From assembly GCA_965644295.1 (NCBI GenBank), contig CBFFRP010000366.1, forward strand, positions 47,156 through 111,155: a stretch of 64,000 bases of DNA, read 5' to 3'. Shown one piece after another: positions 39,883 to 55,595 of the stretch. This DNA comes from Paraphysomonas bandaiensis (lineage: Eukaryota; Protista; Chrysophyceae). The translations under genes were made by a program, and so were the position numbers. Each line of letters opens with the position of its first letter. The stretch's first letter is position 1. The notes under the pieces are model-generated. The model saw nothing but the letters and a program-made list of their open reading frames with translations. It searched no databases and was not told where the DNA came from.

Positions 39883-42798
39883 ATGGTGTCGTGCGGGTAT
39901 GTGTTATCTGAGGACATACCAGCCCTCCACCTCTACCGAGGAGGTCATCTTCTCCCTCTCATTCATCATTATAACAAACACAAACCCCCTCAACCCCTCA
40001 CTATACACACACTCCACACATCAAAGGAACACATCGCCTTATCCCTCTCTATCCCCAATCATGGCCTATCCTGTGCAGTGGTTCTCGATCTTGTCCCTTC
40101 ATCTGTAACCGTCCCGTCTCTCTATACTGTCAGACGTTTCTTTAATCGACTAAAAAAAGGATTGAAATGGTATCTTGAAGGGGTACTCACTTTCTACTTA
40201 AGATCTCCTGTAGTCGGTATGCATGTTATTACGAACAGCGACTCATGTGACACTGCGGCATCTTTACTGCTATGTTCGAAATCCGGATACATATATATAT
40301 TCACGTATTCCACAGAGTGTTATGAGTGGCGCTTACTTACCTCTACAAACATTTGTATTCCCCGACAAAAATCATGTGAAAGTTATGTGTCTACAGTAGA
40401 GTTTCATCCTCGCTCACTTGTTTTATTTTGGGTAGAATATGAGGTAGAAGACAGCTCTGTGACTCATGTTGTGAGGTCTTGTACACTTCCATCATTCCTC
40501 CGCTCTGCTTGTGGGAGTGATGAGATCGGTGACAACTGTAGTGCCATTAATATGAACGGAGGCTTGTGTGATAGTCCGTTTAGTCCTTCGCTATTTTCTC
40601 CGGAGTATATGGCTGTCTCCCTTCTCAGAGTTCCTTCCTGCCAATCCCCCCTCAGTCCAGTTACCCTCTCATCGGATCCTGAAAAGGGATGCTGGATTGT
40701 TGCTCACGGGGTAGAGGAGGGGAAGGAAGCATGTGATCTGACCGTTACCTTCGTGGATCTGTTGTCGGGTCGTCTTCAATCTCACCCGCTTCCACTGTTT
40801 CGTGCTCAGCGTATTCAGCGACTTACGGTATGTCCACTCTCTCAATCATGCGTACCTGGGGCTGCGGCCCTGGTCTTGATGCAGACTACTCCCCCCTCAT
40901 GCCTCGTAGCCACTGTAGCCATCTGCCGACATGCTGGACTGACTGTACTGCCGGCTCAGACTCTCCGCCCGTTGCCTGCTGGGGTCTCTGGGAGACTTCA
41001 CTCTGCGCGGGTGATTGGGGACCACCTAGTTGTTCTTTTCGGGCGACGTGGTACCGTTCTATCTACTCCTTTAACGGGAGTGCTAGCGTGTGTAATACCT
41101 GGGATTGGCGTTAGGATAACTGAAAAAGATAGGATCACTTGGCGCGTTGTACAGCATTGCACTCAGAGTCTCATACCGGCTCGACAAGACGAAACAGACG
41201 CTAAGGCGAATCACTATTCCACTTGTGGGGGGTTCTGGGGATCCACAGATGGTTCATGTGGAATTTACAGCTGCACGGGAGGTATGTGGGGCATGACCAA
41301 TAGTAACACTCCTTCTTCTCCGCTTCATGCCTTTCCAGCTGCTGCAGAAACGAATACTTGTGGGGATTCATTAGTAAATTGGTATAAGAGTAGATACACT
41401 GATTCACACGTTAACAGGAATAGGCCTAATAAAAACGCTCAGTCCTCATCTGAACACATTTTGTATCTTACGAGTGATGGAGATGTGCTCCTTCCTCCGC
41501 GAGAATTTATTTCTTCGTTTATGTCGCAACTACTTGGACGCCCTACCGAGTTTCGTCACTGGCCTCTCGGCTCAGCGGAAGTGGAAGATATTGACAACAC
41601 TGTGTGTAATAATATGTGTGAGGAAATAGGGATCATTTCGATTCTACTGCAGATATCTCTTGGCGATGATGAGCCTCTTATCCAGCGACAGGAACAACAG
41701 GGCTGTGCAAGTAGCCAATGGGATTCTCCTACCATCGAAACTCTTTTCTCGGGCCACGAGGAGCTGTGGTTGGAAAAGAAGGGAAGTCTTGGAGCAAGGG
41801 AGCTTCCTTGTCGTTATTTAGACTTGCAGGAGTTGACCATATCATGTACTGATTCCAGTGAGAGACATACTTACTTGGAACTGGTGGTAGAGTATGTTGC
41901 TATATATCGCCCATGCAGCCTATGGAGACTCACTCTATCCGTTCTTCGCCTCGTGTCATATATAGGCAGTCCGTCTAATATTCCAAGTTCGACATCACTG
42001 ACTGAACTTTGCCGATCCAGCAGCTCCGCGCGTGCAATGTGTGCTGTGTTGGTACGTTGCATTGCGGCTGCTGAAGAAGCTGTTGAGAAAACTTGCGTCA
42101 CGCACACATCTACTTCTGACACGCGCTGTAGAGAAGATGCTGTGCTGCGTCTGCTGTCTCTGAGTGGAGACATGAGTGGAGTGGTGGCACGGATGTTGCG
42201 GTGGGGACGGTCCCAGGAAGCAGTAAAATTGTGCTGCAGTGTGTTTGACGGGTATAATACTAGCCGAGTGAGAGCTGAGCTTGGTGTAGCGGCTTTCTCC
42301 TCTGGTGTTGCAATTGAGGAATTAAGGACTATGACTGAGGAAGAAGATAGTGGCGGAGACTGGGGAGGGACGTGGAAGGATGCATCTGTATCCAGCGGAG
42401 ACGACGAAGAGGAACTGGAAGGGGAAACGAGCTGGCGTGATGTCCACACTGGAGATGAAGGAGTATCAGAGGGGCCTACTCTTTGGGACACCCCATGGAG
42501 TATCGTGGCTTACCAGTACAGAGAAATGTTTTTGCCCTGTCTACGCACCCTTCTTCGTAGTTTGGATATTGATTCTGCTTGTAGACTTATCAGTTGTAGA
42601 CCATCTCCTTCCCTCGGTGGGAAAGGCCCTGGTGGAGGTGTAACCGATAAAGAAATTGTGGAGCTGTTTGAGCAGGTTCGGCACTCTCAGATGACGGAAA
42701 TTACTTCGCTTGGAGGTGATGATTTTGATAGTGAATCAGTTTTACATGGTGAACATCTTCGTCAATTGATCGGTAGCTTGAAATATATTGAACTCTAG
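39883..42798 (+). CDS. Uncharacterised 971-aa single-exon protein (beta-rich N half, helical C half)
   Basis: Long open frame; no motif recognised. Confidence 0.7.
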   Translation: MVSCGYVLSEDIPALHLYRGGHLLPLIHHYNKHKPPQPLTIHTLHTSKEHIALSLSIPNHGLSCAVVLDLVPSSVTVPSLYTVRRFFNRLKKGLKWYLEGVLTFYLRSPVVGMHVITNSDSCDTAASLLLCSKSGYIYIFTYSTECYEWRLLTSTNICIPRQKSCESYVSTVEFHPRSLVLFWVEYEVEDSSVTHVVRSCTLPSFLRSACGSDEIGDNCSAINMNGGLCDSPFSPSLFSPEYMAVSLLRVPSCQSPLSPVTLSSDPEKGCWIVAHGVEEGKEACDLTVTFVDLLSGRLQSHPLPLFRAQRIQRLTVCPLSQSCVPGAAALVLMQTTPPSCLVATVAICRHAGLTVLPAQTLRPLPAGVSGRLHSARVIGDHLVVLFGRRGTVLSTPLTGVLACVIPGIGVRITEKDRITWRVVQHCTQSLIPARQDETDAKANHYSTCGGFWGSTDGSCGIYSCTGGMWGMTNSNTPSSPLHAFPAAAETNTCGDSLVNWYKSRYTDSHVNRNRPNKNAQSSSEHILYLTSDGDVLLPPREFISSFMSQLLGRPTEFRHWPLGSAEVEDIDNTVCNNMCEEIGIISILLQISLGDDEPLIQRQEQQGCASSQWDSPTIETLFSGHEELWLEKKGSLGARELPCRYLDLQELTISCTDSSERHTYLELVVEYVAIYRPCSLWRLTLSVLRLVSYIGSPSNIPSSTSLTELCRSSSSARAMCAVLVRCIAAAEEAVEKTCVTHTSTSDTRCREDAVLRLLSLSGDMSGVVARMLRWGRSQEAVKLCCSVFDGYNTSRVRAELGVAAFSSGVAIEELRTMTEEEDSGGDWGGTWKDASVSSGDDEEELEGETSWRDVHTGDEGVSEGPTLWDTPWSIVAYQYREMFLPCLRTLLRSLDIDSACRLISCRPSPSLGGKGPGGGVTDKEIVELFEQVRHSQMTEITSLGGDDFDSESVLHGEHLRQLIGSLKYIEL

Positions 42799-43214
42799 AT
42801 AGCAATTCTATAGCACAGAATTATAGATTGTAAATAATGTATCTATTTATGAAAGAATTTGAAGATATTGTCTAAGTGTTCAAGATTCGTTTATATTTCA
42901 ACGAGTAATGATATGTTGAGTTACTTAGGCCTATTATACATTACACTATTATATAGATATGACAAGTCTACAAAGAGAAAGAATTTTTCTATTGGCGGGT
43001 TGCGGGCAAATTAAAATCCAGTAAGATTATATTGACATCATTCAAGTCCTCCAAATTGCCCTTACAGTATAATAATATTACTTCAAGTATAAGAGTACTA
43101 TGGTAAAATGCTTTCCATTACAATGCAATGAAAAATTCGCGTATACCGTACCTCTAACGAGGCATATATATTACAACATTAAGAACATTTAAGATTTCTT
43201 CGTTTTGAAGCCAC

Positions 43215-44631
43215 TTATATATCACGCGCATGAAATTTATTGTAGTTATCCATATTTCTCCGTAAAATGGGATCCAGAGGCCCGAATATCCTTTTAAAAG
43301 TAGCTTTATCTAAGAAGAGCACCTTCAGAGTTTGTTTGGGTGCTGCGCGTACTGTCGCTTGTCGGTGTTTCTTTTCAAGCAGTGCAATTTCGCCAAAGTA
43401 GTGACCGGTAGTCAGACTAGACACCACGTTTTCATAACCAGTTGTAGGATCGCGTTGTGTACATATAGCCTCCCCGCTCTACATACCACGCCATGTTAGA
43501 CTTCATACTAGAGTCGCATTGGAGACCACATACTCACCTCAATGATATAGAAAGTGTCCCCAACCTCTCCTTCTTTGCACACAACGGCTTCGTCACTGAA
43601 CTCAGCCGGGAGGAGGGCATCCGCCACCGCCATAACTTCCATTTCACTGAGACTATCCAATATAGGTACTTGCCGCAAAAAGGACATATATTTTTCTCTT
43701 TTTCGGATAGTAGCTCCCACTACTAGGACACGAAATGTGAGACGGTCCAGAGACCACAGACGGCACTCAGAGGATGCGCGGCAAGTCGCAGCCCGTGGTG
43801 CATTGTAAAGCAGGGCAAGCTCGCCAAAAGTACTACCAGCTGAATAGGTGTGTACTAGAGACTCCTCTCCTCCACCTTTGCGAACAAAGACGTCCACCTC
43901 TCCTGATTCCAACAAATAAAAGACATCTCCGGACTCTCCCTGAATTATGATATCTTCTCCAGGTTGTTTAATCAATGGTCCGCTAAGAGCCTTCAAAACT
44001 TGATCCTTAGGCTCTTCGTCAAGGTTCATCAATACCTGCGACTTATGTATAATCTGGATAACAGTAAGAACATTACCTATTATAAAATTTATTGGCCACA
44101 AACCTCCATCAGTGTTGCTGCGTCCTCTTCACTCTTCTCATAAACAGGGATGAGCTTCATGCGCTCCTTGAGAGTCTTCGGGTCTATGGGTTCGGCAGAC
44201 ACAGCCATAGCCCTTGCCCTGCGCTTCTGAATCTTCTCCTCCTCGTCCAGTCCCTCCTCATTGTCGGAGTCAGAGTCCTCTGCCGTAGACCTCGGTGTCT
44301 CCTCTATGACCTCCTTTTCAACTCTGTCAAACCAGCATTATACACAATCTAAAGGAATCATTGTGCTCTTACTCCTCAGCTTTAATGAAACGGGAGTGGA
44401 TCTTTTCCGTCTCGTCCGGATAGGCCTCCAGCAGGTACTCGACCATATACTCGACAGGGTTTGGTGGTTTTGCCTCCAGTACATTCTCGACGAGCTTTGT
44501 GAATATTGTGTTGAAGTCTTTGCTATCTAAGTACGTCTGAAGCTGTGCTTGTACATGCGCAGCCTATACACACGTAGCCATAACCCTCAATACACACACA
44601 TACCCCTGTGACTTACATGTTCCTCAGCCAT
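43215..44631 (-). CDS. PRKAR: cAMP-dependent protein kinase regulatory subunit
   Basis: D/D domain (KPPNPVEYMVEYL), inhibitor site RRARAMAVSAE, two cNMP cassettes FGELALLYNAPRAAT and FGEIALLEKKHRQAT. Confidence 0.92.
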
Positions 44632-44754
44632 GACAAGCACTCAGGATAACTAACACCACTAGAGAAGGAATAGAGACGATGGGCGAAGAAGCCGATGACA
44701 CTTCTATAACTATAGTTTAAAACTGCCACAGGTCCACACTGTACTACAGCACGT

Positions 44755-45405
44755 GTATGCATGTATGTATGTATGTATGTATGTATGTATGTATGTATGC
44801 ATGTATGTATGTATGTATGTAGGTATGTATGTATGTATGTATGTATGTATGTATGTACGTATGTATGTATGTATGTATGTATGTATGTATGTATGCATGT
44901 ATGTATTTATGTATGTATGTATGTATGTATGTATGTATGTATGTATGTATGTATGTATGTATGTATGTATGTAGGTATGTATGTATGTATGTATGTATGT
45001 ATGTATGTATGTATGTATGTATGTATGTACGTATGTATGTATGTATGTATGTATGTATGTATGTATGTATGTATGTATGTATGTATGTATGTATGTATGT
45101 ATGTATGTATGTATGTATGTATGTATGTATGTATGTATGTATGTATGTATGTATGTATGTATGTATGTATGTATGTATGTATGTATGTATGTATGTATGT
45201 TTGTGTATGTATGTATGTATGTATGTATGTATGTATGTATGTATGTATGTATGTATGTATGTATGTATGTATGTATGTATGTATGTATGTATGTATGTAT
45301 GTATGTATGTATGTATGTATGTATGTATGTATGTATGTATGTATGTATGTATGTATGTATGTATGTATGTATGTATGTATGTATGTATGTATGTATGTAT
45401 GTATG
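44755..45405. repeat. About 650-bp (TATG)n microsatellite in the divergent promoter
   Basis: Direct inspection. Confidence 0.98.
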
Positions 45406-45565
45406 AGTATTCGGTGTGTAGGTACAGCATGGTATGTTGGAGTGCTGGAGCAATCTATCTATCTATCTATGCATGTAGATGTCTGATCATATCTCTCACA
45501 GTAGTATCTATCCATCCTTTACATCCAAAGTATCAGCGTTTGATCTGCCCATATATCAGTAGTAC

Positions 45566-48500
45566 ATGGAGGGGTTCGAGTCTCTGGATACTCTCATAGC
45601 ACAGTGCATAGATAACTCCCCTCATGTACACGTGCTCCGTCGACAAGCCTCTCGTCTTATTCATCGTATGCATGCAGTGCGATCAGGTTTAGTTCATCGT
45701 ATAGATCGTATAGAGAGAGGCACAGGAGAGATCACTGAGGACGATATGAGGGATATAAACACACTGGAGAGAGACGTACAGACACTTGCTGATGCTATCC
45801 ACTCACGTCTACTGGTCCCTATATACGAGTGGCCATCTTGTGATGAGTATTCATCAATAGTGAAATATTTCCAAAAGGTTTACGCTGATATTATCAAGTT
45901 GAATGACTCGATGAACCTTCAATTGCCTTTGCCAGTTATTAAAGAAGACTGGCAGGACACTATCGATGCGGCTATTGATTGGATGGACTGCTTGAGTGAC
46001 ATAGAAAGCAACGTAGATTCGAGAACACCCGATGTGCTGGAGTGCATCAATGGACAGAACCCTGGAGCCCCTCGCTTGTTGCAGATTTGTGCAGAAGATA
46101 TCATAGAAATGCACAACGTGTTGGATCCGGCACCCAAAGAAAACCGAGAGTGCATTCATGCAGAAAGCGACTCTGATGAGGAGCAGCAGTCTACAAATGT
46201 GGCACAGAATGAGCATGTTACTCATTCTTCCTCTGTGTCTTGTCATCTGGGAGTTGTGCGGGGTGCTCCTGTTCATTTGAAAATTGTGACTGCAGAGGCT
46301 GTTCGAGGTGGACGCGGAGGCGGGGGATTGTTGCACTTGGCGTATTTATCTAATAACACGGCGCAGTCGGATTACTTGCAACGAGTACTAGCGGTGTGCT
46401 TGGAGGCGGAAAAGCTGAAAACCTTCTCTCAAGAAAAAGTTCGAACTGATGAGCTGGAGGGTATTACCACCGACAGTGACACGAAGCCTGCTGCTTTTGG
46501 TATCGATGCTCTTGCTACTAGTTTGACATGCGTTAATGCTTTAGTTGGGTCGGGCGAGAGCGAGGAATTTTCTTGTTTCCCTCATAGCATTGTTCTTATC
46601 TCACAGCTGGCTCCATTCGGCTCCCTCCGGGAGTTCATGTCCCACCCTCCTGATGACGTGCTCGTAGACGAATCCACACAACTGCGTAAGGACAAATATA
46701 ATGGGGGGGTAATCAGTCCTCTTGTTAAAGCCTCTATTATGCTGGATGTGTGCTCTGGACTACAGGCGCTACACGCCAAAGGCATAGCACATGGACGATT
46801 GCACTATAACAATGTGCTCATATTCCAAGGCTATCGTGCAAAGTTATGTGACTTCGGACTTGCCCACGTCTTGAATCCCCAATCGAATCGGGGGGGAGAT
46901 GTCCCAGGACCTGATTCAAAGTCGGTTGAAGCCGGGGGAATTGGTTGTGAGGCTAGGTGGAAGGCTCCTGAGGTCTCGCTGCGGTTTAAGGAGATGGAGG
47001 GTTTGCTGCACACCACTGCGGTGAGTTAAGACGTGTCAAATGACCTTGTAGGCATTACTCTTATGGTGTTGCATTAACGCTATACTCGTGCTGTTTAGGC
47101 GGATGTATATAGTCTTGGTATGGTTATGTTTTCTGTGGTAACGGAAGGGTTGAAACCGTTCTTTAACTTGCCCTGGGAAGAGGCCGTCATTAACAGTCTC
47201 TCCCGAGGAGAAAGGTTATAACATATGTAATGCATCTTTTTGGTCCCTTATTTTTGGTAACACAGGCCGGCATTTCCTCGAAAAGTTCCATTTCGAAATA
47301 CCTTTAAGCCTGTAGTGGCGGAAGATGACGGGTTGGTAGTGAGATGCTGGCGAAATCACCCTGAAGAGAGGATAAATTTGAGAGATGTGGAGGTGAAATG
47401 ATGACTTCTTGCCTCTGTCACGTGATTAGCTGACACTTATACGTAGCCCGTTCTGAAATCCATTCTCATTGACGTAATGTATGAAAATGAAACGAGGTGA
47501 GTGGTATAGATGCATAACAGTTTTTCTCACAATTGCTGTACAGAATTAGAGAAGAGCTGGAGTGCGATATAAATATCGCTGAGATGAATGCGGATGGTAT
47601 TCCTTTGAACTATTCTCTTTGGGTTTGTCTTATCGTGGCGATATGTAATTATTGCAGTTAAAGCGAAGAAGTTAGCAGCCGGGGAGAATAAAGCGGAGAA
47701 AGCCAAAAGCATTCTGCAAAAAAAGGAGGTGACTTTGTATTTTGTCCTTCTGGTCGAGTATTGATATTTAAATTCAGGATGATATGAACGCGAAAAAACT
47801 AGCTAGTGAAAAGAGGAAGCTCAAGGCTGCTCTTGATAAAGCGAGGTAAGTGTATACTTTGAGCATTTTCTCTTCATATTAGCTTTTTACAGACCTAAAT
47901 TAACGGCGCTGGAGGCTGAAAACGAAGTTCTTCGTGGTGAGATTGAGGCGCGCAAGAAAGAAAGGTCGGATGGGTATTCTTGGACATATAACAATAATAT
48001 GTGCAAACAGTTCCCGGCTGAGAGCAGAATTGAAGGCTTCAGACAAGCGACTCATGGGTGGAAAGAATTACATTTTACGTCACCGGACTTGGAATGATAC
48101 ATTTGATATTGTACGTACTTGATTTTGACTCTAAATTGCCTAATTTGTCATTTTTTCGCTGCAGGGGGAATTGATTTCCAGATATGGACGCAAACATGAG
48201 GTACCATATCTCACCAAGTGGTGTGGTCCAAAGCATGCTCTGAAATCATTTGCATTCGAGTGCGGGAGACCACTTGAGGAACACGACGAGATTGGTATGA
48301 ATTAGGCTATTCTTTGTGCACGAACTGCCTTATCAGTGCTGTTGGAATGTTGTGTGCAGATGACTCAGCGCTGTTGTCCTTGTGTGCTGGCTCCATGTAT
48401 GGCAGGGTGAGTGAACCACAGGTGGATACCTCTATGTTTTTTCAGTTCCATATCAATTCCGGTGAAACTTCTGGAACAAGTTCTAGTGGTGGTAAGGTTC

Positions 48501-50420
48501 ATTCTTCAGCAGTATCATCAGATGTAGATAACCCATTGGGTGGCGGCCCATTTCGTCGAGCCAGTATCAAACAATTTTATAACAATGACACGCTGGTTCG
48601 TACTACTTCTCGTGATTCCATTGGAAGTATTGGACGATCTACTTCATTGCATGGGGATGGTGCCGAGATCTGGGACTGGCCAGCGAGCGATGTTGATGGT
48701 GTGAGTAGGAAGAGTAAGGGTAAGTCTGCGTCCGGAGATGAGTTCCGACCCATTTCCAGACAGAATCCTCAATCTGCTATACACGTCGACATGACTGAGG
48801 TACATAGCTTACCGATTGTGTCTCTTTTTTCTATCTCCTTTGTTAATATCTAAAATTATTTACAGGAACTGAGGAATCTTGACCTCGATGAAGATATGTA
48901 TGACATAGATGTGCAGACAGACGAACCAGAGACGATGTTTCTGACAGCCTTAAGGTTATCTTGAGTTATGCTCACGATTCCTCTTACTTATTTGTTGCAG
49001 GGGCGATGTAGTAGAGTCTGTGGGGATGTACCGTAGTCAGGTAGGAAACATATTCATACCTTTAGTATGTAATCGCACGTAGTGCTTCAATGTCAAGTTC
49101 ATCAACGAGGTCGCCGCTGCCTGGCAGGGTCAGGCTACTATCAATCAAGAGGTAATTTGTAGATGACTTCAGGATTTTACTTACTTTATTAAGGATCTTG
49201 AGTCATGGTCAAGCCCCTGTCACTTAGCGGCACATCTGGGACACCTGTCGGTGAGTGTAGGAACTATATATGTTTGTTTGAGGTGATGATGGTCGTAGGT
49301 GTTGAGGAATCTGATTGAAGTAAATGGACTCCCACCAGATCAACCGTCAGATGAGTATGAACGTACGCCCTTGCATCTTGCATGCCGTGCTGGGCACCTA
49401 CATATAGTGCGCTACTTAGTGGAGAGGCACAAATCTGACATGGAGAGGGCTGGTCAGTTTTTGCTGCAGTCATGTGTTGATGACTGACTGCTGCTTGCTC
49501 GTAGATCATGAATCTCTGACTCCAATTCTTGTCGCTGCAATGTGCGGGCACGCGGCTATTGTCAGCTATATATCGAAGCGACTTAAGCACAAGGTAGGCA
49601 CTTATATGTTACGGCTCGTACCTGATATCCCATGCAGAGCGGAAAGGACTTTTATGCAGACAAGGTATGTGAGGATGTTCTTGTCAAGAGTAACATGATA
49701 ACTTGAGTAGGAATTGGGAGGATCCCTTCTACACTGGGCCTGCGTCTGTAGCACTTCCACTGTGTATAGGAGAACCATGTGCACTATTGATTCTCGCCAC
49801 CTCGACACAGTGTACCTTGCATTGACTGACCTCAAAATTCCGGTTGATATAAGGTAAAGTGAAGCTGTTGTGCTCTGTATCGAGTTTAATTGAAGTAGGT
49901 CCAGCATTGATCAGAGCACCCCGCTGCACTGGGCGTGCGCTGTTTCCCCACCTACCCGTACTAAGCTTAAGGTCCAGCCACTCAACCTTGAATGTACTTT
50001 GTACGGTAATTGTCCCCTCAGGTAATAGAAGCGCTTGTGGAGAAAGGAGCTGATGTGAATGCGGAGGACGATGAAGGTAATACTAGGAATCCGGGAGCTG
50101 TAAAGCACTAAAATATTCTTCATACTCTCAGGACAAACATGCTTATTCTACGCAGCGGCTAGTGGTGATATTGTCCTCGTTAGGTATGATTTTTACGTAC
50201 TTATCCATTGTTTGACTATACTCACAGAATATTGGTGGAGAAGTTAAATGTTGTAGTGGGGAAGAAAGATATAGACGGGGACACTGCTCTAAAGGTATCA
50301 TGTTTCTAGGTCAAATTGGAATGTATTTTCTCACCTGTGTGAAAATAGGTTGCAACGGGTGAGTGTTACGCTTATTTAAAATCCAGATCTCATGGAAAGC
50401 GATTCTCTATACTGTATTAG
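45566..50420 (+). CDS. MLKL-like protein: N-terminal 4-helix bundle, pseudokinase, coiled coil, C-terminal ankyrin repeats; multi-exon
   Basis: N-terminus RRQASRLIHR; VHLK, HGRLHYNNVLI, LCDFG, RWKAPE, DVYSLG; ankyrin TPLHLAC, TPILVAA, PLHWA, TCLFYAA. Confidence 0.8.
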
Positions 50421-50951
50421 CATGAACTATTTATATATGTGTCGTACATCTATCCTAAATAAAGTCAAACGTAACTTGGAAATAGATATATTCTTATGGG
50501 TGCCTGCGTTTAGACCTTGATTTCTTTCTATCGCCGTTGTATATGCTAGTTCACCTTTCCGGCTACTTCCAACATAGCATCATGATGATGTGAAATTAAT
50601 GATGACTTTAGCTCTATGGTTCATCTACTTTCTAGAACTATCAACTCGGTAAAACTGAAAGCCCAAAGTGTATATTGACACATAGCTTGCTTGCTTTAAG
50701 CAGTCTATGTACTGCAGTGTCACAAATCCCTAGAATGTGTTATTGCGGTGACAAGACATCTATCGCCTACAATCATGAAGATATACTAAAAAGTTGGCTT
50801 AAAATGCAATTGTTAAATTGTAAAGATAGAAAAAAATTTAATTCAACTCTTTGGTCTCAACGAGAGGCGCATCCGTAAATCAGTAGTCTATAATCTTACT
50901 TTTAAATTAAACATCTTACTGCCAATACTATTGAACGAAGGAGTTTAATTA

Positions 50952-54071: not shown

Positions 54072-55595
54072 TTACACTATGCGAATATTTTTAAATTGCC
54101 ATGGGTCCGATTGATCCATGTCTTCTGGAAACAGCACACCCTTACCATTAAGAGGAGTCCAATCCGTAAACACCCCAACTACTGGAGATATATATGGTGA
54201 CATCGTATCCAGGATCTCATCATATGGAAGGTACTCTGGCTCAAGAACCCCTCTGTTCGGATTACGAATGGCCCATAGAACCCCAGCCAGAACAGCGGAG
54301 GTCACCTGCAACGACGTTGCTGAGTTGTATTTAGCAAGTTTCCGAGCGGCATTGCACTCAAGTTGGCTCCCGTACCAGTAGGCGTACGGTTCAACCACAA
54401 CTCCAACACCGTCATCAGAGGAACTCTTCGAACCCATAATGAGCACTCCCAGCTCATCAACTCCCCCTTGTATTTCTTCGACAACTACTACCTTTTCCGT
54501 AAAAAAATCTTTATTCCAATTTTGCGCAGCTAGTTCCTCCAAAGCAAGGACCGCACTGTCGCACGGTCGGTAGGCATACATCACAGTTGGGCGCCATCGC
54601 ACATCTGTTTCCTCACTGCCAGACCTCACGGTGAAGTAGTCTGCAATGGATATAGCCTCGTTATGAGTAATAAGATATCCCGCATGTGCACCCCCTTGAG
54701 GTGTCCATGACCGAACCCGAGTACCAGCACCAGGTCGTGTCAAAAATATTGCGGCACCACACCCAGTCGCATGCTCTCTACCGTCAACCGGAAGACTTTT
54801 CTCATGTGTACCCCACCCGAGTTCAGCTGGCTGGCAGCCCTCGGACAGAAAACCATCTACACTCCAGGTATTTACAAACCGATTCACACCGTCCAATCCG
54901 CAGCGCGCTGTTGTCTCAGTCCATTGAGAGTCCCGTTCTGATATATGAATGGCTTGTACGCCCAGAGACATTGCAAGGCGGCCCCACTCCTCTCGAGATG
55001 TGGGTATCGGCGTGGAACCTTCACCAAAATGCTCAGCAGCAATGTTAAGCAAGGCCTGTTTCACAAAATGTGACACCATTCCAGGGTTCGCCCCATGGGT
55101 AATAATAGCTGTTGATGAGTCCTTCGGACGGGTTCTCAGATAAGCGAGTGCCTCCTCCCGCAGGGCGTAATTGGTTCGTTGAGCCATACTTAGCTCAGGA
55201 TTGTCATAAGTCCCTGGCCAAGGCTCAACAACTGTGTCTATATATAGCACCCCCCTTTTCTGACACCATTTGATGACATCAACAGAAGACACATCAACAG
55301 ACAAGTTGACGATAAAATCACCCTTCACAAGCTGATACCTCTCCAAAATACATTCATAATTATCAGGCGTCAGCTTCTGAACTAAGAACGGAACTCCATA
55401 CAGCTTATGCACCTCTTCAGCGACATGAGTTCTGTCTTCGCCCGTGATTATCGATATGGCCTTATCTTGAGTGAAATTAATATGACGCAATAGAAGAGGA
55501 AGCACTCCGAGGCCGATACTTCCCACTCCAATGAGCAAAAGCTTCCCATCATAAGTGATTGGGACTATTTGTTGTTCATTATCTTCGTGTGTCAT
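54072..55595 (-). CDS. hss: Homospermidine synthase, bacterial/viral type, intronless
   Basis: GVGSIG Rossmann motif, NLSVDVSS, YIDTVVEPW, GANPGMVSHFVKQAL, NTWSVDGFLSEG.QPAELGWGTHE, ITHNEAISIADY, NSATSLQV, DPWQFKN. Confidence 0.93.
   Translation of the reverse strand: MTHEDNEQQIVPITYDGKLLLIGVGSIGLGVLPLLLRHINFTQDKAISIITGEDRTHVAEEVHKLYGVPFLVQKLTPDNYECILERYQLVKGDFIVNLSVDVSSVDVIKWCQKRGVLYIDTVVEPWPGTYDNPELSMAQRTNYALREEALAYLRTRPKDSSTAIITHGANPGMVSHFVKQALLNIAAEHFGEGSTPIPTSREEWGRLAMSLGVQAIHISERDSQWTETTARCGLDGVNRFVNTWSVDGFLSEGCQPAELGWGTHEKSLPVDGREHATGCGAAIFLTRPGAGTRVRSWTPQGGAHAGYLITHNEAISIADYFTVRSGSEETDVRWRPTVMYAYRPCDSAVLALEELAAQNWNKDFFTEKVVVVEEIQGGVDELGVLIMGSKSSSDDGVGVVVEPYAYWYGSQLECNAARKLAKYNSATSLQVTSAVLAGVLWAIRNPNRGVLEPEYLPYDEILDTMSPYISPVVGVFTDWTPLNGKGVLFPEDMDQSDPWQFKNIRIV

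Follow-up and report, generated by a model that had tools for sequence, protein, structure and literature searches.

An ankyrin-tailed pseudokinase gene of a marine protist with a predicted MLKL-like N-terminal bundle and brace

We analysed a 64,000-nucleotide stretch of the genome of Paraphysomonas bandaiensis (the window; assembly GCA_965644295.1, contig CBFFRP010000366.1, positions 47,156 to 111,155), and within it one gene on the forward strand at 45566-50420, whose product joins a helical N-terminal head to a pseudokinase and a tail of ankyrin repeats. Positions given below are those of the window, and features of this gene lie on the forward strand. Our best reading is that the gene encodes an autoinhibited membrane effector of the MLKL type with an ankyrin tail that binds a partner, and we put the probability of this at roughly 45%. 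The reading is carried by the predicted fold of the head, for which MLKL is the best structural match, and by the place of that head directly before a pseudokinase whose catalytic loop is altered much as it is in MLKL. An architecture of MLKL-like four-helix bundle (4HB), pseudokinase and ankyrin repeats had been proposed in the initial annotation, which was made from the letters of the DNA, and it holds with the predicted fold and with a single spliced mRNA.

Spliced transcript contigs define a single gene of 24 exons, running from the ATG at 45566 to the TAG that ends at 50420 and encoding 1,222 amino acids. The first exon supplies 485 codons from this ATG and is followed by a chain of short exons; the introns between them have GT-AG ends and are 42-78 nucleotides (nt) long, and a single frame stays open to the stop. 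A contig of 3,770 nt from RNA run X1 corresponds to 45515-50470 with the introns removed; it contains no upstream exon, and its start places the 5' untranslated region at 45515-45565. A second spliced contig with the same span and junctions was obtained from run X2, which belongs to a separate study, and a marine polyA metatranscriptome (X5) yielded fragments of the gene with the same junctions and an identity of at least 99%. The stretch is unspliced in DNA run X10. The junctions in the transcript contigs number 15 listed by position and 8 more, in agreement with the 23 introns of the model. The 39 nt at 48407-48445 are kept, in frame, in the mRNA of all three RNA sources (X1, X2 and X5), and the model therefore has 24 exons and 1,222 residues. 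This short piece has perfect GT..AG ends, an intron-like length and no stop, and represents either a former intron that has become part of the exon or one that is spliced out alternatively and was missed by the contigs.

The RNA data also settle whether the kinase and ankyrin parts belong together, for which the initial annotation had named RNA-seq as the check. One spliced mRNA covers all of the gene, and the alternative of two separate genes is ruled out by the contigs that join the two parts. A viral or transposon gene is ruled out by the 23 spliceosomal introns, by the host-like GC content (about 42% across the window, which is eukaryotic DNA) and by the ordinary neighbours. All searches and fold predictions described below were run exon by exon.

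AlphaFold2 (AF2), run on an alignment of six sequences, predicted a four-helix bundle in residues 1-116 (45566-45913), with helices at 2-20, 25-50, 58-82 and 94-116, and two brace-like helices in residues 128-164 (45947-46057), at 128/129-148 and 154-164. The predicted local distance difference test (pLDDT) was about 80-90 in the bundle and the predicted template modelling score (pTM) was 0.64, and a second AF2 run with a different alignment, of seven sequences, reproduced the six helices. The first model was used for the fold searches. Foldseek against the Protein Data Bank (PDB) returned N-terminal domains of MLKL in nine of the ten best rows, at a probability of up to 1.00 and template modelling (TM) scores of 0.5-0.6 by target, with weak E-values. 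With VIA-align, human MLKL came first among 48,161 representative chains (Z 13.6, root-mean-square deviation (rmsd) 3.3 Å, 143 of 152 residues), residues 1-148 of the model lying on residues 1-152 of human MLKL nearly in register; full-length mouse MLKL came second (Z 12.5), and the best unrelated chain was the THATCH core (Z 10.3). Re-ranking of the Foldseek list by VIA-align put MLKL in all of the top eight rows, including AtMLKL2 (Z 11.2, 164 residues), and gave Z values of 8.6 for AtMLKL3, 9.2 for the CC-R domain of NRG1 and 5.8 for the HeLo domain of HET-s, the next-best folds after MLKL being the adaptor bundles THATCH and Cbl 4H. In the ESM Atlas, the chordate MLKL cluster came first by shape (TM 0.60, 165 residues, rmsd 3.3 Å), and a search by language-model features placed nearest a cluster with PF22215, the Pfam family MLKL_N (score 0.77, a lead only).

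These results suggest that residues 1-164 form an MLKL/HeLo-type four-helix bundle followed by a two-helix brace. The 4HB fold and the brace-like segment put forward earlier are thus both recovered as predictions, with MLKL as the best structural match in three libraries and with the model helices 128-148 and 154-164 aligning with MLKL up to residue 152. For this verdict we gave more weight to the agreement across libraries, to the coverage of both bundle and brace, and to the context than to the Z value itself. In plants, MLKLs have been accepted as structural homologues on HeLo superpositions of 3.7-4.0 Å (bioRxiv 10.1101/681015).

The likeness had originally been drawn from an ungapped alignment of the N-terminus with human MLKL. 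Residues Q27, R30, L31, H33 and R34 are indeed identical and share the same numbering (human residues 18-35), but this match, taken alone, is no better than chance. Three of these residues, Q27, R30 and R34, belong to the basic helix alpha2 and are invariant in the four closest relatives. The charge pattern extends through the family, alpha2 being net positive in six of seven relatives and the first brace helix net negative in all seven. The most conserved motif of the N-terminal region stands at the start of the brace, W129 Q130 D131 followed by D138 W139, and both D131 and D138 are invariant in the family. For mouse MLKL an 'electrostatic zipper' has been described that includes a salt bridge between R30 in alpha2 and D139 in the first helix of the brace, and the mutation D139V, which removes this bridge, makes the protein constitutively lethal (PMC7305203). 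Perhaps a contact between alpha2 and the brace, resembling this zipper, is also present in the protist protein.

The pseudokinase occupies residues ~225-566 (46238-47392, with introns at 47021-47098 and 47215-47265), as placed by Pfam, by kinase matches in the PDB and by the transcript junctions. Within exon 1, residues 340-451 match PF07714 (PK_Tyr_Ser-Thr) with 40.4 bits (cut-off 23.1) and PF00069 (Pkinase) with 37.6 bits (cut-off 31.7), and the profile match runs on into exon 2. From the family alignment, the beta3 lysine is K239 (in the motif APVHLK; 46280-46282) and is invariant, and the DFG motif, D429 F430 G431 (46850-46858), is kept. The catalytic loop reads H409-G-R-L-H-Y-N-N416 (46790-46813), so that the catalytic Asp has become Arg while the Asn is kept. 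This confirmed the earlier description of an HGR loop without Asp, at residues 409-411, next to a conserved Lys (K239) and DFG (D429-F-G). The loop is HGR or HGH in all relatives, with Lys, Asn and the DFG Asp invariant, and the Gly-rich loop is degenerate. In human MLKL the corresponding motif is HGK (PMC4718504).

With its Lys, Asn and DFG kept, the pseudokinase may still bind nucleotide. One could go further and suppose that the enzyme is active despite its HGR by means of an alternative catalytic base, as in some atypical kinases, and that the protein is an ordinary TKL-like kinase that bears ankyrin repeats and is regulated by an N-terminal bundle. The conserved beta3 Lys, Asn416 and DFG Asp, through which nucleotide or metal binding may persist, would agree with this, but every relative has Arg or His in place of the catalytic Asp, HRD is found in none of them and the Gly-rich loop is degenerate, and we regard an active kinase as very improbable.

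Beyond the kinase, exons 5-9 (47544-48110) encode a Lys/Glu-rich stretch of about 100 residues, delimited by their translations and by colinear orthologue matches. One orthologue carries this region uninterrupted by introns, and there a crude score for heptads is highest over ~100 residues in which Pro and Gly are scarce, which suggests that exons 5-9 are coiled-coil-like. Exon 10 (48165-48294) encodes a 43-residue segment that is conserved among orthologues and matches no known family in Pfam, and exon 11 (48360-48799) a poorly conserved Ser/Gly-rich linker that appears as a single block, 48359-48797, in X1, X2 and X5. Exons 12-24 (48866-50420, with the TAG at 50418-50420) encode some 7-8 ankyrin repeats, as placed by Pfam, the translations and the transcript junctions. 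On the exon at 49299-49451 Pfam gave Ank (E 1.2e-8), Ank_3 (8.8e-8) and Ank_2 (1.2e-7), and weaker Ank matches were obtained on the exons at 49507-49593 and 49900-49971. The coiled coil and ankyrin repeats that had been noted at the C-terminus are therefore present there, the former as the heptad-like exons 5-9 and the latter with the Ank match of E 1.2e-8.

Among 1.84 billion representatives, an exhaustive search with HMMER returned seven matches, five of which are true relatives (P0001, P0002, P0003, P0005 and P0007); the other two, P0004 and P0006, were rejected as low-complexity false matches. A word-index search with the kinase part found one relative, P0008, which makes a sixth related cluster. 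All of the relatives are uncharacterised eukaryotic contigs from metagenomes and Logan assemblies, and their called proteins are first exons that reach the same intron position and end in ...A|VS. No relative of the head was found on viral contigs or on the metagenome contigs of JGI. One orthologous contig (L002) shows matches in order to nearly every exon, from the head to the last ankyrin exon, and another (L003) is colinear up to its end. Two further loci (L009 and L010/L011) have kinase pieces followed by ankyrin repeats, with fewer introns, so that Ank matches lie downstream in L002, L009 and L010/L011. This colinear order is kept in every relative whose downstream DNA is available, and therefore the architecture is under selection. 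The flanks of L002 showed no synteny with the window.

Several results weigh against an MLKL-type effector and have to be set beside the evidence above. At the sequence level the head is an orphan. Residues 1-225 matched no Pfam family and gave no PDB sequence match in either single-sequence or family-profile searches, the profile returning noise only, and Pfam applied to six N-domains (the gene product and five relatives) with E values up to 10 again gave noise only and no MLKL_N. A scan of the whole genome with PF22215 found four other loci, two of them above the cut-off, and not the gene at 45566-50420. No link between the head and MLKL_N was obtained with phmmer, hmmsearch, hhalign or the Pfam MLKL_N model, and by sequence the head is not a member of that family. 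When the head family was compared by hhalign with three MLKL_N domains that Pfam recognises in this genome, no significance was reached (E 0.17), and the sole alignment offered was in the register of the ungapped alignment described above; a profile of the three other MLKL_N heads of this genome matches human MLKL at 7e-9. In word-index protein searches the N-domain found no relative and the MLKL_N alignment of this genome returned its own sequence alone.

The kinase shows no special affinity for MLKL either. Its best PDB matches, with the single sequence and with the family profile, are EGFR, GCN2, TIE2, RIPK1, PDK1 and LIMK1, and MLKL is absent from the best 60 PDB sequence matches. Such matches speak neither for orthology of the pseudokinase with that of MLKL nor for a shared origin of the module as a whole. 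In an AF2 run on the whole first exon the kinase part had a pLDDT below 50. Unlike in MLKL, a disordered acidic linker of about 60 residues (165-224; 46058-46237), with a pLDDT below 50 and rich in D/E in all relatives, separates the brace from the kinase. The alpha2-brace contact is proposed from charges, the alignments behind the AF2 models are shallow (6-7 sequences), and helical bundles may reach Z values of ~13-14 from their arrangement alone. To these points belong also the copy number of the gene and the stronger conservation of its tail, which are described below.

Taken together with one another, the missing sequence signal even with profiles, the four loci that Pfam MLKL_N finds while missing this gene, the shallow alignments and the kinase that is not MLKL-like by sequence would fit a quite different explanation, that residues 1-164 are an unrelated lineage-specific helical domain set on a divergent pseudokinase, and that its helix packing resembles that of MLKL by coincidence, in which case MLKL would tell nothing about the protein; a best Z of ~14 is typical of models made up mostly of helices. 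We nevertheless consider this improbable. MLKL is at the top in three libraries and in the top eight re-ranked rows, over the whole domain including the brace, and in the hallmark motif of alpha2 five residues are the same under the same numbers. The position of the domain, directly upstream of an HGx pseudokinase as in MLKL, would be an extra and independent coincidence.

The comparison with L002 shows where the protein is constrained. Identity is 36% in exon 1, 68% in exon 2, 50-73% in the coiled-coil exons and mostly 50-80% in the ankyrin exons, so the ankyrin and coiled-coil tail is under tighter constraint than the head. Searched against the genome, head and kinase each matched the gene itself and no paralogue, and the gene is thus single-copy. 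Its transcripts are present both in transcriptomes of ordinary cultures and in polyA RNA from the ocean, the source being a cultured, free-living marine protist that is also found in ocean metatranscriptomes. Upstream, in head-to-head orientation, lies a gene for a protein with a cyclic-nucleotide-binding domain (43212-44569, reverse strand; Pfam cNMP_binding, E 2.8e-23). The most distant orthologue, L004, keeps this neighbour (at 286-1582), with an identity of 52-67% for the neighbour versus ~25% for the MLKL-like exon 1; the pairing is not found in L002. A shared bidirectional promoter or a functional link between the two genes is possible.

These findings would suit a non-lethal job for the protein. 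The bundle would then be a regulated head for docking to a membrane or a partner, on a conserved scaffold in which the ankyrin repeats and the coiled coil hold an endogenous partner, for example from the cytoskeleton, the flagellum or cyclic-nucleotide signalling, and activation would relocate the complex without rupture of the membrane. A single-copy gene, tail exons more conserved than the head, constitutive expression in cultures and ocean, the cNMP-binding neighbour kept beside the most distant orthologue, and adaptor bundles (THATCH and Cbl 4H) as next-best folds all agree with such a role, as does the report that the immunity function of plant MLKL is separable from cell death and that the protein associates with microtubules (bioRxiv 10.1101/681015). 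However, the closest fold is specifically that of a killer domain with its brace, in register, the charges of alpha2 and brace suggest autoinhibition of something that needs restraint, and vertebrate MLKL is also single-copy. We think such a docking function rather unlikely, though it is the strongest of the alternatives. Copy number, conserved tail and constitutive expression favour it more than they favour a sensor of pathogens. An arms-race reading of the tail is weakened because the gene is single-copy and the tail is better conserved than the head, and a conserved endogenous partner fits better.

Under the preferred reading, that of an autoinhibited MLKL-type membrane effector, the 1,222-residue protein would be cytosolic and consist of bundle, brace, acidic linker, pseudokinase, coiled-coil-like stretch, Ser-rich linker and ankyrin repeats. 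At rest, by analogy with MLKL and its plant counterparts, the acidic first brace helix, with D131 and D138, might lie on the basic alpha2, with R30 and R34, in the manner of the R30-D139 zipper, and the brace together with the pseudokinase would keep the bundle shut. The trigger could act on the pseudokinase as the switch, either through phosphorylation of its long Ser/Gly-rich activation segment or through a partner that docks on the ankyrin repeats. Oligomerisation would be promoted by the coiled coil, which would gather several heads, and the freed bundles might bind to acidic lipids of the membrane and disturb it or make it permeable. The outcome would be cell death or a milder membrane event. 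The initial annotation had proposed a combination of sensor, switch and executioner in cell death or antiviral defence, a role that the protein may have.

The four PF22215 loci elsewhere in the genome (on contigs C135, C617, C367 and C590) carry the domain as the N-terminal head of large multidomain proteins. Their heads are Pfam-positive and their fusion partners differ, whereas the head studied here is Pfam-negative. In the gene on C135 (L005, 19025-22366), MLKL_N (35.6 bits) stands directly before a kinase with an HGH loop. BLASTP between this gene and the one at 45566-50420 was not significant and gave no detectable paralogy, and, as far as similarity searches can tell, the latter gene is a family separate from the Pfam-positive MLKL_N genes of the genome.

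The protein can be compared with several known systems. With vertebrate MLKL, the effector of necroptosis (PDB 6ux8, 2msv and 4btf), it would share the bundle, the two brace helices and the pseudokinase (model superposition with Z 13.6 and 3.3 Å), residues Q27, R30, L31, H33 and R34 of alpha2, an HRD motif reduced to HG and a basic residue, and the retained beta3 Lys. It differs in the lack of similarity at the level of MLKL_N or profile searches, in a kinase that by sequence is not MLKL-like and keeps its DFG, in the acidic disordered linker of ~60 residues, and in ~650 extra C-terminal residues without an MLKL counterpart. We know of no RIPK3 or RHIM partner for the protist protein. The plant MLKLs AtMLKL1-3 (PDB 6lba and 6ka4) likewise have a HeLo-type bundle, a brace, a pseudokinase and a C-terminal extension with a Ser-rich region, but their brace has five helices, they contain no ankyrin repeats or coiled coil, and no sequence similarity to them was detected here; their own definition likewise rests on structural homology with MLKL (bioRxiv 10.1101/681015).

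RIPK4 and ANKK1 have a kinase, an intermediate region and a C-terminal ankyrin array in the same order as our protein. Theirs are active kinases without an N-terminal bundle, whereas here the catalytic Asp is absent, and RIPK1 is one of many PDB matches with similar scores; no specific sequence affinity for such kinases emerges here. The usual triggers of fungal HeLo/HELL proteins are amyloid motifs or NLRs. These proteins belong to the same superfamily of membrane-targeting bundles and some are fused to a kinase or pseudokinase, but the match to the HeLo domain of HET-s was weak (Z 5.8) and no amyloid motif or NLR trigger was seen in our protein. HELL domains with kinase or pseudokinase domains have been noted in fungi (PMC12881547).

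Some features of the surroundings deserve mention. A (TGTA)n microsatellite at 44754-45405 (TRF; ~163 copies, 96% matches) occupies most of the intergenic space between the divergent cNMP-binding gene and the gene described here and ends ~110 nt before the transcript start; just downstream of it, DNA run X10 has an 11-nt deletion at 45435. At 39883-42798 (forward strand) there is an uninterrupted open reading frame (ORF) of 971 codons without a Pfam family, which is unusual where short introns are dense. An intron-free ORF of 507 codons at 54072-55595 (reverse strand) encodes a saccharopine dehydrogenase, with both Pfam domains at E ~5e-26, and is an ordinary host neighbour.

MLKL-type modules have been described in vertebrates and seed plants. 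In the full-text literature we found neither a protein with bundle, brace, pseudokinase, coiled coil and ankyrin repeats nor any MLKL-like protein of stramenopiles, and the design appears to be undescribed. We do not file the protein as a member of the MLKL family, because membership in Pfam MLKL_N fails and orthology of the kinase is not established, but by analogy it probably works like one. Marine protists are heavily invaded by viruses, and it is tempting to see here an ancient eukaryotic MLKL module that in this stramenopile lineage acquired a sensor in the ankyrin repeats and an oligomeriser in the coiled coil, a necroptosis-like suicide or abortive-infection device in one protein; we think this unlikely, although slightly less so than a coincidental fold. 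The built-in ankyrin repeats and coiled coil suggest that sensing and oligomerisation, which in animals need RIPK3, may be hard-wired in this protein. MLKL-like heads missed by Pfam can be recovered through fold prediction, and therefore the spread of such heads among protists is probably underestimated. The finding bears on whether the module of bundle, brace and pseudokinase predates the vertebrate, plant and fungal lineages, and the protist protein would offer a tractable outgroup for how the MLKL switch works and for what it was first used.

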